Assembly: GCA_038496445.1 (NCBI GenBank)
Contig: JALMLS010000289.1
Span: forward strand, 1-64,000
DNA: 64,000 nucleotides
Source of the DNA: Trichosphaerium sp. ATCC 40318
Lineage: Eukaryota > Protista > Tubulinea
Direction of reading: 5' to 3'
The notes beneath the pieces were generated by a model that saw nothing but the letters and a program-made list of their open reading frames with translations, searched no databases and was not told the origin of the DNA. Both the position numbers and the translations under genes were made by a program. How positions within the stretch are numbered: the stretch's first letter is position 1; the number at the start of each line of letters is the position of its first letter. Below, piece after piece: positions 1,539 through 29,660 of this stretch.

Positions 1539-4500
1539 ATGAACTCTGCAGTTTGTGGTCTCGCATTCTTCCTTATCGTTCTCGTAACTCGCTCGAACTG
1601 CGCTTCAAACGCTAGTCCAAGTACTGTTTTCTTATGTAACGCGACCTCAACAAAATGGGGATGTGCACTGGAAGACTGGACTCTAAAACGACAAAAATTA
1701 GATGACGACACATTCATTATGGTTCCAAACCGATTGAAATGTACAACAGTACCAGAACAATATATGAGTTGGGCGACAAAAACTGTTCGTACTGACAGAT
1801 ACCTTCTCTTTGCTGGCGAAGAATCATCCCCACAACAAGAGTATATACCTGGGAGTATTGTACAAGTATCATTAATCGCGACAAAGTACTCGGCAAAGTA
1901 CAGAGGTCTACTGTTGTGCGTACATTGACAACTTTAGTCCGGAGATCATTGTTTTTTTTTTTGATTGTTACAGAAAAAATCACTTTCTTGATGTGTCTTC
2001 GTATTAACTTACTAACAATATTCGTTTTAGATACGCAGAAGATGATAATAATAACCATGTCGGAGAGTGGAAGCTATCTACAACTGAATCTCCTCGTAAG
2101 AACACCTTTTTTGGAAAACGCTTTTGCGTTTTGCCGGTTTTCTTGGATATTTTCCGTCAATGTCATCCTTTTAACATGTTTCTTGTAGCATTGTTCCAAT
2201 TACCTTGGGGAAATGGATCGTTTTGCAGACAATCTGTAATGCACTCAACAGCAGAATTGAAGCCTTTAAAATATACCTTTACTTTTATCGCTCCTCCAAT
2301 GGGTACTGGAAAGATCACTTTCAGAGCTCTTGTAAAGAGCGGTGATGCAAATACTGGCGACTTTTGGTGGCCTAACTTGGAAGGAGATGTCACCTTGACA
2401 GAATCGTCGGAATCCCTTCCAAACACAGGATGGTTCCAAACTCAAGTACGCTTTTTTCCTCTCATGTTGTTTTCGTAAGTTGTCACATACTTATTCTCTA
2501 CCAAGCTTGGACAATCATGCGCTGATAGATGTGAGGCTGAGAGCCTCAAATGTGATACTGTTTCAATGGAAGTATCAACAGCATCAGTAAAGTTGAATCT
2601 GAATTATCGCCAGCAGGCTTTATTTGCGAAAAACCAATCTTGAGCGGTTGTAGCTCTATTGGTGCTTCTCAAAGTGCTGATGGATTTTGCTACTTTGACG
2701 ACACAAAATGCGAATCTCAAGGTCGTACAGATGAAGCTGTTTCATGTGAGGCTAAAACCACAGATGAAGAAGACGGGTATGCTCCTTTTTTTCAGGAAAC
2801 TGTTTTTCTCAAACTAACTCTTTCACTGTAGTCTTCGCTTCTGTAAATGTATTGAAGTCACTCAAGCACCTGTAGAGCCAGAAAACACCACAGTTCCAAC
2901 AAATGCTCCTCCAACAACTGATGCGCCTACTGTTGCTCCTACTGTTACTGCTATTGAAGTACTTGCTCCTTCAAACGAAACCTCCTTTTTGTCACCATCA
3001 TCGCGACCAACGGTTTCAGTATTGTTCCTCTGTTTGTGCACACTTGGCTTGGCTTTCTTCAAAGGAGGTCGTTCATCAACACCCATGCTACTTGTAGTTG
3101 TACTAGTTGCTCTTATTGCTATGCCATCCGTACAAGGACATAACTGGATGTTCAGTCTTAGTAGACGTCCATACGCAAGTACAGAAACACCTTGTCCTCC
3201 GGTAAATCAAGAATATCCTCATGTTCAAGTTGGACCGAATCAAGAGTTCGAGATGGAGTGGGCTCAAGGCCACAGCAGTACATCTTACTTTATTATCATG
3301 CACCAGAAGTACGAGGACAAGTTGAAGCTAAACAACCAAGCTCTATTTGCAAAGTACTTTAATGACGCACCTGCCGGAGCTGTAAAGACACTTGAAGTCC
3401 TTCACAGACGTTTCGCTTATCGTGAACCTAATGCAGTAAAAGACGCTCCACTTGGTGACGAGATCTTAAGCACAGATGGAGACTTTATTCCTAGACCAGA
3501 AGCTTTTGGTGGTTGGGGTGTTAACGCAACGTTATTCAAATACAAGGAAAACCTTCACGAGAATAACTACGCTGAATATGAACATCCAGATATGCCTTGG
3601 GTTGAAGCCATCTTTAAAGCAGAACATCTCACAGGACAACCTAGAGATGCTGATATGGCTAAATTTACTATACCTGGCCGAGCTGGTACAGGTAGATACA
3701 TCGTTCATTGGCTATGGAGAGGTTACAGGGATTGTATTGATGTTGATTACGTTGAAGAAAATGTTGAAGAGATCTATGGTGTTGCAGACGAATCAGAATC
3801 TTACGCGTACGATAGCATACGTTTTAGTGCCTTTTTTTTTTGACTAGTTTTGGTCGTTTTCGTGACCTCATTTTATGTAAATCTACTGGTTTAGACTTGA
3901 ATCACGTGATCGTAGTGTTCGAAAACTTATTTTATTTTAGACGCGTAGATCATTGTTATTTCCCAGAATACCGTTCGGCAGGAGGTAAGCGTATATGATT
4001 AATACAAACGAATCTTTGTTGACACCTTTTTGTAGATTGCAGTCGCTTAGTCTCTAACGATTTGGCCTACTGCCAAAGAAGGTGTACAACCAACTGTGCT
4101 GGTGTGGCTGTTATGCCTTTATCAGTAGCAAATTTCTACAGCGAAGAAGCTGGTCTTGTTGACCCTTCGTGCATGAACCTATTCAATATGACAATAGAAA
4201 CTGAAGCACCAGAGGATATTAATGTTTGCTTTTATGTTAGAGCTAGACTGCCTTCTGATACTTTTGGTGTCAACGAAATTGTATATCCAGATGACCCAGC
4301 ATATCAAGCAACTTGCTTCATGAAAACCCCAGGGCGTATATTCCCTGGGTACGTACCACCAACGACAAAACACATTCCATGGAAACACGGAGACAAATGC
4401 ATTGATTGTGACACTGTTAAATTGAATAGTGTTTTATCAGTAATCCCAAAATGGCCTCTTTCTGACGATTGTGTTAATTGTGACCGCGAGCCGAGCACAA

Positions 4501-4883
4501 TTGAACTACCCAAGGTACCTACACTTACAAATGAAAGGGTAAACTCTACCTGTAATGGAGCAAACGGCCTCTGGAGAAATGTCAATGGATCAAAATATCA
4601 TACTTGTAATGGTACAAACGCAGAAGTTGGTGAACTATGTCACAAGCAACTTTCTATCAACGGACGTTCGCTAAATGTCCAATTCTTCCCTTCAGAGTGC
4701 GCAGCAGCTGCAGCTAGGGATCCTGAATGTGCAGGCCATGTATCAATATACGGAGGTAGTCTATATGTTGGCTCTAAACGAAGTGGAAAATGCTACTGCC
4801 AAACAAAGGTAGAGTGTTGTAATGGGTGTCATCGCATATCTAGAAATGAACGTTGGACATTATTCGATGTTGAATACTTGTAA
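1539..4883 (+). CDS. Secreted/membrane multidomain protein: signal peptide, Reeler domain, Cys-rich region, Pro/Thr stalk, TM segment, internal signal peptide, LPMO-like His-brace domain, Cys-rich C-terminus
   Basis: ATG 1539 with signal peptide. Reeler motifs YIPGSIVQVSL..KYRGLLLYAED...VGEW and HSTAELK..YTFTFIAPPMGTGKITFRALVK across GT-AG introns. Exon 2832-3806 is open from the stalk through VQG|HNW to GRYIVHWLWRGYRDCIDV. Last exon ends TAA 4883. An apparent 1-nt frameshift lies near 2587-2592. Confidence 0.75.
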
Positions 4884-5343: not shown

Positions 5344-6901
5344 TTACAAAATAGTTACAATGTTAGTAAATGTTTGTTCTTGTGTTGCATCATTATCGAA
5401 TATATTATCATCATAAAGAACTGCTTGCTGGTCAATAACAGTATTAATATGAGGAGTGAAAGTATCACCAAAATCAAGACCAACAAGAACACCATAACGA
5501 CTAACAAGAAGGTTTGTTAAAACAGTTTCCAATGTAAGTTCATCAACAATAACACCTTGAGCATGTACAGAAAGTCTTTGTAACCTTGGTACCATACTAC
5601 TATTAGCTAGAGACTCAAAGAAGTTTACTTTATCAGATATTGATGCATCAGCATAACCAAGAGTAGTAATAGAAGAATTAGGGTTGTTAAGAGCATCTAA
5701 GAAAAGCTTGTTGTAACTTTCTTCGAATCCAGGAATTTCATGGCTAAATCACGTGTAAGTGTCAAATGTCAAACCAAAAAAAATCAAAAATTCGAGAAAA
5801 CTACGATCACATTTATCACGTGTGTTTTGTGAAACGTCGGGTTTTAATCCTCAAGGCATGTAAAACTAATTTACATCATAATATAACGTAAATGATGTTG
5901 TAACGAAGCTGTAGCATTAGCAGAATAAAATTTCTTTTTAAAAAAAAAAAAAAGAATTTCACGACAGGTTTGGAAGCGCTTGACAACAAACATATCCAAA
6001 TATCTAAACGACTGTGTTACGTACTTATTACAGAACCTTATGAGAAGAGTCTTCAATGATGAATTATACTTTATAGACTTCATCAATACATAGAAAGTCT
6101 CCTTTCTGAAAACAACACCATCCAAACATAAATACGTTAAAACATTTCTTTCAAGCCTATAAGTCATAGCTTTTGTTATAGCCATATCGATAACATATCC
6201 ATTATTACTCAACCTTGTAGCTTTTGTAATATTCCTACAAAGTATTTTCTTTATAAGGTCAAAAGAGAGGAACTGAAAGAGACCATCTTGCTTGTATTTC
6301 GAGATAAGGATCAATCTAACTTCTGACCATGTGAAATCACTTGATACCTTATTTATAGTAGATACACGCCAACCAGATGCTTGTTCCGAGTTTACGAAAA
6401 CGTTTATAGCGTTTATAGTAATATTGCCGTTATACCTTTTAATAAATACGTTAATTAATGCGCTACACGATAAACAGCGAAAATGGCGTCGTTGTGGTGT
6501 ATTTGCTAAAAACCGACAACTTTTTATTAAAATCATAATTTGAAGCCTTTTTCTAGTCTGTGATGGTGTATAGTATAAAATAGCGAATGTTTGACGCCGA
6601 CGTACAAATCTGGATGATAATCAACTTGATACGGCGTTAAACGCCCTAAACGCTTTGTGAACTCTGCAACCACCTCTTTTAACTTGTGTACACGCGTCTT
6701 CGGTATTAGATAATTTAGAACATTCTTGCGATCCCATACTGACATACAAAAGCACTCTGGTTTGGATCCAGAGTCACGAAATATGAATGTTTTGCCTTTT
6801 GCTTTTTTACCATGTACAAGAAGGCTTTGCGCATCTTCTTCCCTTAGTATTGGAAGGTAGAAACCCATAATGCCACCCCAGAGTTGTTTACGCAACCGCA
6901 A
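5344..6901 (-). CDS. SH2-domain protein with RNI/LRR-like C-terminal region (at least 3 exons; start unresolved)
   Basis: SH2 signature REEDAQSLL...GKTFIFRDSGSKPECFCMSV...VLNYLI (FLVRES-like Arg kept). A GTACGT..TAG intron joins it in frame to LKRLQIMILIKS. A second GTACGT intron joins to HEIPGFEESYNKLFLDALNNPNSSITTL. The NSSLKTL/NSSITTL repeats look RNI-like. Confidence 0.7.
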
Positions 6902-21419: not shown

Positions 21420-21840
21420 GCAAGTCACATGAACAGTAAAACAGTGCAAAAATTGCATGTTGCAGGATTCGAACTTGCGAGGGCCCCAACGGACTTAAAC
21501 CGTTCACCATAAACCACTCGGTCAAACATGCGTATGTTACATATACAGAGGTTTTGGTGAGGAACGCTTGCCAATAATCGAGGCTGTAGAACAAAAATTG
21601 TTTTTACAATGAAATAGAAAAAAACAAGAAATACCTTTCGTTACAAAACAACATTTCCTTTTCAGTGCATTTCCAGTGCAAGTTTGTACAGAGAATCCAG
21701 AAATAAATATGTAGTTGCCAGTGTAGTTACGTTAAGAAACAACTAAAAAGCGATTAGAGAAAACAAGATAAATAAGACGGTCTTACCCTTTGAACTGCCA
21801 AGATGACAACCTCAACCTTTTGTTAATGGCAACCATGTGA
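21420..21840 (-). repeat. ~420-bp dispersed repeat containing a tRNA, copy A (inverted relative to ~29235-29660)
   Basis: The reverse complement aligns with copy B: near-identical over TTGTTCTACAGCCTCGATTATTGGCAAGCG..CCTCACCAAAACCTCTGTATATGTAACATAC-tRNA-ATTTTTGCACTGTTTTACTGTTCA, more diverged toward the 5' end. Confidence 0.85.
21454..21531 (-). tRNA. trnL-UAA: tRNA-Leu(UAA), possibly a pseudogene (shortened variable arm, A-C mismatch in T-stem)
   Basis: GCATGTT/AACATGC acceptor stem, discriminator A, D-arm ACCGAGTGGTTTATGGT, anticodon arm AACGG-TTTAAGT-CCGTT, T-loop TTCGAAT, T5 terminator just downstream. Confidence 0.75.
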
Positions 21841-29234: not shown

Positions 29235-29660
29235 CACATAGTTGTCACCAACAAACTGGCTGTTTGTTGCTCTCTTGACAATTCAATAACGCTTTTCTCA
29301 TATTTATCTTGCTTGCTCTCATTGCTCTTTGTTGTTTTTTATGTAACAACTCTAGTGTTTACGCGCCTGTTTCTGGATTTTCGTACAATCCATGGTGGAG
29401 AAGAATGCACTGAAAAAACAAATTTGTTTTGTAGCGAAGGTATTTCTTGTTTTTCTTTTGTTTCATTGTACATATAACTTTTGTTCTACAGCCTCGATTA
29501 TTGGCAAGCGGTCCTCACCAAAACCTCTGTATATGTAACATACGCATGTTTGACCGAGTGGTTTATGGTGAATGGTATGAGTCTATTTGGGAGAGATCCC
29601 TCGCGGGTTCGAATCCTGCAACATGCAATTTTTGCACTGTTTTACTGTTCACGTGGCTTA
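29235..29660 (+). repeat. ~420-bp dispersed repeat containing a tRNA, copy B
   Basis: Inverted homolog of 21420-21840. Confidence 0.85.
29544..29627 (+). tRNA. tRNA-Leu-derived gene with altered anticodon loop (anticodon UGA = Ser; A at position 33), probably a pseudogene or alloacceptor
   Basis: Same acceptor and D arms as copy A; AATGG-TATGAGT-CTATT; intact variable arm GGGA-GAGA-TCCC; GCGGG-TTCGAAT-CCTGC; discriminator A; T5 downstream. Confidence 0.7.

Follow-up and report, generated by a model that had tools for sequence, protein, structure and literature searches.

The window, as the whole stretch of DNA analysed is called here, comprises 64,000 nucleotides of Trichosphaerium sp. ATCC 40318 (positions 1 to 64,000 of contig JALMLS010000289.1, assembly GCA_038496445.1), and the gene considered in it occupies positions 1539 to 4883 of the plus strand. 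This gene appears to encode a secretory precursor, in which an upstream Reeler half is followed by an internal signal-peptide-like segment and then by a domain that opens with a histidine and resembles, in its structural model, the lytic polysaccharide monooxygenases (LPMOs); the domain is named HNW here after its N-terminal motif. The base composition of the window is about 37% G+C, and the introns are short and of the GT..AG type. The exons of the derived gene model are labelled 1-4 and 6-8, there being no exon 5, and they are separated by six introns of 115, 93, 60, 55, 134 and 51 nt, each GT..AG. No second copy of the gene was found in the window by tblastn with its relatives. The features of the gene are listed below by their positions in the window; h1 and h2 denote the two hydrophobic segments of exon 6, and the P numbers denote relatives.

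1539-1915, plus strand: exon 1, with the start codon, an N-terminal signal peptide (MNSAVCGLAFFLIVLVTRSNC...) and the first portion of the Reeler module, from the translation of the open reading frame (ORF)
2031-2095, plus strand: exon 2, continuation of the Reeler module, joined by in-frame GT..AG splicing
2189-2445, plus strand: exon 3, the Reeler core (..HSTAELKPLKYTFTFIAPPMGTGKITF..), homologous to the stretch of P0008 and P0016 that matches the Pfam Reeler family
2506-2776, plus strand: exon 4, encoding a conserved module rich in Cys and containing a frame break of one base, from the Cys consensus of 86 relatives and three-frame alignments
2557-2621, plus strand: the frame-break interval within exon 4, with the base runs TTT (2561-2563) and AAA (2588-2590) as candidate sites
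2832-3012, plus strand: first part of exon 6, the end of the Cys module (LRFCKC) and then a Pro/Thr-rich stalk, from the translation
3013-3060, plus strand: h1, a 16-residue hydrophobic segment (VSVLFLCLCTLGLAFF) in the translation, read as a stop-transfer anchor or, alternatively, as similar to a glycosylphosphatidylinositol (GPI) signal
3061-3084, plus strand: the basic loop KGGRSSTP in the translation, probably cytosolic
3085-3138, plus strand: h2, a signal-peptide-like segment (MLLVVVLVALIAMPSVQG) that ends in VQG, with a predicted signal-peptidase cut after the Gly at 3136-3138
3139-3806, plus strand: the HNW domain, with an LPMO-like beta-sandwich model and with His1 at 3139, His45 at 3271 and Tyr196 at 3724, from alignment, AlphaFold2 and VIA-align
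3941-3984, plus strand: exon 7, a short linker exon, stop-free and spliced in frame
4036-4883, plus strand: exon 8, encoding Cys-rich modules at the C-terminus and lacking a hydrophobic tail before the stop codon, collinear with residues 597-880 of P0001

For the exon at 2832-3806, the initial annotation had described a single stop-free unit in which a stalk, a hydrophobic segment, the loop KGGRSSTP, a second signal peptide and the histidine codon at 3139 succeed one another, and the same order is seen in the translation, whose frame is open over 2833-3843 with the first stop at 3841. The second histidine that had been singled out, in EWAQGH at 3271, proves to be residue 45 of the HNW domain, and the tyrosine of RGYRDCIDV at 3724 is residue 196. 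From His3139 to the stop codon the downstream half amounts to 519 residues without a hydrophobic tail, and the Cys-rich modules of exon 8 gave no match in Pfam. The in-frame joining of this exon to the upstream Cys-rich exons, which had also been claimed, holds in part: the splice from 2776 to 2832 keeps the frame (gg + t = Gly), but the frame is broken inside the exon at 2506-2776.

The junction between the two halves is widely shared. A HMMER search with 3085-3804 as the query against a library of 1.84 billion protein cluster representatives returned 434 relatives at E<1e-3, the closest sharing 42% identity. The residue aligned with His3139 could be mapped in 136 of the top 150 relatives, to which the junction counts that follow refer, and it is a histidine in 135 of them. 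The domain is internal in 92, where the histidine lies at positions 88-921 of the protein, and in 34 relatives a plain N-terminal signal peptide directly precedes the HNW domain in a protein that starts with Met. Immediately before the histidine, at position -1, the internal forms have Ala (74), Gly (11) or Ser (7), so that the residue is small in 92/92, and position -3 is occupied only by A, V, T, S, C or G, again in all 92. Two separate hydrophobic segments lie within 60 residues upstream of the histidine in 78 of the 92 internal forms. The loop between h1 and h2 has a median length of 5 residues and a mean net charge of +1.27 (at least +1 in 73%, negative in 4%), and the uncharged-residue medians are 17 for h1 (interquartile range 14-20) and 16 for h2. 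The downstream half is without a later transmembrane segment in 64 of 72 relatives, and no protein with two HNW domains was found among the relatives.

The arrangement of transmembrane segment, loop, signal and histidine noted in this one gene, when sought in other protists, is present in about two-thirds of the mapped relatives (92/136), and the cut that had been predicted before the histidine finds support in the -3/-1 rule, obeyed in every internal form, in the net positive loop and in the occurrence of the same domain behind N-terminal signal peptides elsewhere. Judged from these alignments, the junction is a family feature far beyond chance, given its recurrence in so many diverged relatives, and its predicted anatomy consists of a stop-transfer segment, followed by a turn in the cytosol and then by a cleavable signal for re-entry. 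On a tree inferred by maximum likelihood from 79 domains, internal and N-terminal forms interleave, and at least 9 switches between the two states are required by branches with good support. Such repeated swapping of h2 and an ordinary signal peptide is expected if both do the same job.

For the HNW domain itself, the residues that had been proposed as critical are indeed the conserved ones. In an alignment of 79 sequences W3, H45 and Y73 are invariant, and H1, N2, R9, Y196, D198 and D201, among others, are conserved in at least 90%, His1 being present in 78 of 79; His1, His45 and Tyr196 are accordingly all invariant or nearly so. The AlphaFold2 model of the domain has a predicted local distance difference test (pLDDT) score of 92.2 and a predicted template modelling (pTM) score of 0.90, and Tyr196 opens its last strand, E196-204. 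When 48,161 chains were compared with the model by VIA-align, the top matches were LaX325 (Z 7.9), the AA15 protein of Thermobia (TdAA15, Z 7.6) and an AA13 protein (AoAA13, Z 6.7); AA9, AA10, AA11 and AA16 proteins appeared at Z 5.5-6.2, mixed with other immunoglobulin (Ig)-like sandwiches, and LPMOs made up about 15-20 of each top 50. The nearest neighbours by protein language model were LPMO-type clusters, with scores below 0.9, and Foldseek searches of the AlphaFold database clusters and the ESM Atlas gave weak or generic Ig-like matches only. The domain has no match in Pfam, where none of the 79 members matched even at E 5, and none in NCBIfam, and a profile search of PDB sequences gave nothing relevant. 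On the strength of its model, the domain may be read as LPMO- or X325-like in design, yet as a new family by sequence.

The upstream half had been called a Reeler gene, and this assignment stands. Single exons of the window gave no Reeler match in Pfam, though they are collinear with P0008 and P0016, which match the Reeler family PF02014 at 34.9 and 37.3 bits, respectively (cutoff 21); the family is matched by 31 of 86 upstream parts of relatives. An AlphaFold model of residues 1-376 of P0001 (pLDDT 87.7) fits the reeler domain of F-spondin (2zot) with an E-value of 1.5e-9 and a target template modelling score of 0.73; ferric-chelate reductase 1 and insect defence proteins have Reeler domains that it likewise matches. 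By the model of this relative, the upstream half has a genuine Reeler fold. C-terminal to the Reeler domain lies a family-specific Cys-rich module, defined by the consensus Cys pattern of 86 relatives. In four relatives (e.g. P0009:213-298 and P0039:197-291) this module shows a sub-threshold match to the C-terminal end of Pfam Glyco_transf_18 (GnT-V), and the two regions may share a fold. Sub-threshold DOMON matches were seen between the Reeler module and the junction in P0039 (339-436, 20.9 bits) and P0028 (512-558, 28.1 bits; cutoff 32.7), and the plastocyanin/azurin copper-binding family was matched by two other upstream parts of relatives. These DOMON and cupredoxin matches are a weak hint that the upstream half may act as a redox partner.

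Whether both halves are read in one frame can be judged from transcripts and from genomic sequence. Four relatives, P0001, P0004, P0008 and P0016, are collinear with 1551-4871 of the window, and the N-termini of P0001, P0004 and P0016 map by tblastn onto 1551-1916. Internal forms are found in Trinity transcriptomes of two Amoebozoa, Flabellula baltica (two paralogues) and Rhizamoeba saxonica, and in MMETSP transcriptomes (Mataza sp., of the Cercozoa, MMETSP0206 and MMETSP0437). Many other internal forms come from metatranscriptome contigs that scarcely exceed the ORF, that of P0001 extending over 46-2976 of a contig of 2994 nt. P0175 is an intronless ORF of 1276 codons on a genomic contig of 182 kb with eukaryotic gene neighbours, and it has both a Pfam Reeler match and the same junction. 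The single ORF over both halves that had been assumed is therefore borne out in the relatives, by transcripts and by P0175; in the present copy the splice from 2776 to 2832 keeps the frame, but the frame break lies at 2557-2621.

Three relatives deserve separate mention. P0022 (1542 residues) and P0024 (1616 residues) have a WW domain, as a rule a cytosolic module, at their end, so that a released HNW product would there be a membrane protein with a cytosolic tail. The annotated start of P0120, an NCBI protein of Amorphochlora amoebiformis, resembles the junction of h1, loop and h2 (MAVAGGMLGGLSLLVLRKSG...PVSA|HNW), and its public gene model has probably lost the upstream Reeler exons.

From these comparisons it seems fairly probable that the locus encodes one secretory precursor, cut at an internal signal peptide into a Reeler protein and a copper-brace protein that begins with His1. 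The precursor would have about 945 residues and consist of a signal peptide, the Reeler module, the Cys-rich module, the stalk, h1, the loop, h2, the HNW domain and the terminal Cys-rich modules. Its first signal peptide would open translocation into the endoplasmic reticulum; h1 would halt translocation and span the membrane from lumen to cytosol, the basic loop would remain in the cytosol, and h2 would re-insert from cytosol to lumen, whereupon translocation would resume and signal peptidase would cut after VQG. This topology follows from the lumenal action of signal peptidase, since h2 must then run from cytosol to lumen and h1 from lumen to cytosol; the loop is read as cytosolic because it is short and basic and fits the positive-inside rule. 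Two products would arise in a 1:1 ratio. The first would be a Reeler protein held in the membrane by the hairpin of h1 and h2, which signal peptide peptidase might trim or a GPI anchor might replace, and the second a soluble protein of 519 residues whose residue 1 is His. In the latter, a histidine brace for copper would be built from His1, His45 and Tyr196 on the LPMO-like beta-sandwich. The interpretation is supported at the level of the family, from whose sequences we infer the cleavage, the topology, the copper binding and any enzymatic activity.

Several observations weigh against this interpretation. The likeness of the HNW fold to known folds is middling, as its Z values do not exceed 7.9 while values below 8 are common according to the note that accompanies the tool. 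The best Foldseek match in the PDB, CjAA10B, is weak (E 8e-3, template modelling score 0.23), and no sequence link of the domain to any LPMO family was found in Pfam, NCBIfam or the PDB sequences. As full membrane spans, both h1 and h2 would be short, and in this copy a Met stands exactly at the start of h2 (ATG 3085). In addition, the homologous frame switches from frame 1 to frame 0 within 2557-2621 of exon 4, and such a break, if real, would end the upstream ORF at TGA 2641 and uncouple the two halves.

The frame break was delimited by aligning the three frames with relatives. A conserved G-x-S-C-x3-C-x6-C-D pattern is read in frame 1 up to about 2590, and the next conserved pattern, C-x-x-P-x4-C, in frame 0 from about 2560 on. 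The flanking conserved Cys codons are 68 nt apart here, as against 22-23 residues in relatives, and exon 4 would need one more base to keep the frame over its full length. An intron does not remedy the break, as within 2554-2624 no pair among all those enumerated (GT at 2560, 2572, 2587 and 2592; AG ends at 2572, 2581, 2587, 2592, 2613 and 2616) has a length of 2 mod 3. An intron of 83 or 86 nt starting from GTGAGG at 2531 restores the frame, but it removes two near-invariant Cys and was rejected. Going by the aligned relatives, the simplest account may be one missing base, possibly in a short run, which would be either an assembly error or a true frameshift. It is conceivable, though rather unlikely, that this copy was disabled only recently, as a pseudogene within a multigene family that otherwise functions; the one-base break for which splicing offers no remedy is what such a gene might show, but its remaining exons are all open and keep their conserved residues, and the break adjoins short runs of bases.

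For h1, a variant of the split precursor has to be considered in which this segment serves as a GPI-attachment signal, so that the Reeler half would be GPI-anchored and a hairpin peptide of about 40 residues, from the omega site to the signal-peptidase site, would be discarded. This variant, in which the gene would in effect be a head-to-tail fusion of a GPI-anchored and a secreted protein that each kept their own signals, is unlikely. X325 proteins are GPI-anchored, h1 is short, and the fraction of small residues before it (a region rich in Ser, Gly, Ala and Asn) is 0.52 versus 0.41 in the body of the protein; an internally placed GPI signal was moreover functional in a DAF-hGH chimera (PMC2288913). 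However, the enrichment in small residues is weak, h1 is internal rather than C-terminal, and the basic residues that follow it would be just as much at home in a stop-transfer anchor. Only five short fragments came from a search for Reeler proteins that end at h1 without a fused second half.

There is also a small chance that the precursor is not cut at all, in which case h1 and h2 would form a permanent hairpin of two helices, both domains would be extracellular on one chain, and the conserved histidine would be an ordinary internal residue. The similar lengths of the two segments (17 and 16 uncharged residues) and the tight loop are what a stable hairpin would have, and AlphaFold renders both segments as helices, with low confidence. 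A plain anchor, however, needs no signal-peptidase-type residues at -1 and -3, and these precede the invariant histidine in 92/92 internal forms; nor does it account for the 34 relatives in which the same histidine follows a normal N-terminal signal peptide, with forms that interconvert repeatedly on the tree. That the halves are independent products, the second arising from its own transcript or from ATG 3085 and the open frame being incidental, is very improbable, for although stand-alone forms of the HNW domain exist and this copy combines a Met at the start of h2 with an upstream frame break that, if real, would leave an own start as the sole route to its second half, a Met that might serve as a separate start (at -30 to -14) is present in only 35 of the 92 internal forms and missing from 57, so that independent initiation cannot be the general mechanism, the junction frame is open in about 90 relatives below 50% identity, and ORFs derived from transcripts, together with the intronless genomic ORF of P0175, cover both halves.

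Elsewhere in the window, two adjacent minus-strand ORFs in different frames occupy 5871-6901 and overlap by 4 nt; the upstream one, at 6533-6901, reads like an SH2 domain (..TFIFRDSGSKPECFCMSVW..), and the arrangement could reflect an intron or a further single-base frame break. An Rfam scan of the window gave no match at the gathering score. Two tRNA genes were predicted by ARAGORN:

21454-21531, minus strand: tRNA-Leu(taa)
29544-29627, plus strand: tRNA-Ser(tga)

Both the type of mechanism proposed for the precursor, as in IGSF1 and viral polyproteins, and the histidine-brace design are already known, and what appears to be new is their combination, the HNW sequence family and the breadth of its conservation. 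By analogy, IGSF1 is the closest cellular precedent. According to PMC5841168 (citing Robakis 2008), its second transmembrane segment works as an internal signal peptide; signal peptidase makes the cut during translation, signal peptide peptidase acts next, and two proteins with different fates result. IGSF1 resembles the precursor in having an internal signal peptide behind a first transmembrane segment. The two differ in that IGSF1, a single vertebrate gene, has Ig loops on either side and no chemistry that depends on the new N-terminus, whereas the cut considered here would create a metal-binding or catalytic residue, in a layout that a large family of protists has retained. The glycoprotein polyproteins of viruses (flaviviruses and pestiviruses, and the bunyavirus GPC) likewise alternate stop-transfer and internal signals and are cut by host signal peptidase, but they are encoded by viral genomes and undergo several cuts, in contrast to a cellular gene with one junction.

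For the two halves taken separately, the nearest known systems are also only partly alike. The LPMOs (CAZy AA9-AA17) and the X325/Bim1 proteins share with the HNW domain a His1 that follows a signal peptide, a second conserved His, a conserved Tyr in a late strand followed by C-x-D-V, and, with moderate scores for the model of the HNW domain, an Ig-like beta-sandwich. The HNW domain differs from them in the lack of any sequence match, in its distinct N-terminal HNW motif and in about 100 extra residues that include two helices. The Reeler fold of the upstream half is found in F-spondin, FRRS1/SDR2 and insect Hdd11/noduler, but in the present family a Cys-rich module of its own and the hairpin junction come after it; the two relatives with sub-threshold DOMON matches recall the Reeler-DOMON-cytochrome b561 layout of FRRS1. 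No literature that connects LPMOs to internal signal peptides, or histidine braces to Reeler domains, was found in a search that left most subscription journals outside its reach.

In multimodular LPMOs the catalytic domain is always N-terminal, owing to the N-terminal His (PMC10154629). An internal signal peptide would allow a domain dependent on a free N-terminal His to lie downstream of another domain, and the present family would be a conserved genetic way round this rule of histidine-brace copper proteins. It would also extend the histidine-brace-like proteins by a large family of protists that lacks annotation and provide, after IGSF1, a second cellular case in which an internal signal peptide splits a precursor, here with a clear chemical purpose of the cut. 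None of these genes would be caught by domain searches for LPMOs that insist on an N-terminal location. That the domain is constantly paired with a Reeler half suggests a partner in function, be it for electrons, for copper or for binding of the substrate. A tentative and rather doubtful extension is that the two products form an obligate two-component copper/redox pair outside the cell, produced at one membrane site in equal quantities, in which the tethered Reeler protein, akin to the Reeler domain of ferric-chelate reductase 1 and lengthened in some relatives by DOMON- or cupredoxin-like modules, would pass electrons or copper to the released histidine-brace protein of the new family. If this is true, the internal signal peptide would be an evolved device that frees such domains from the N-terminus rule, at least in Amoebozoa and Rhizaria.

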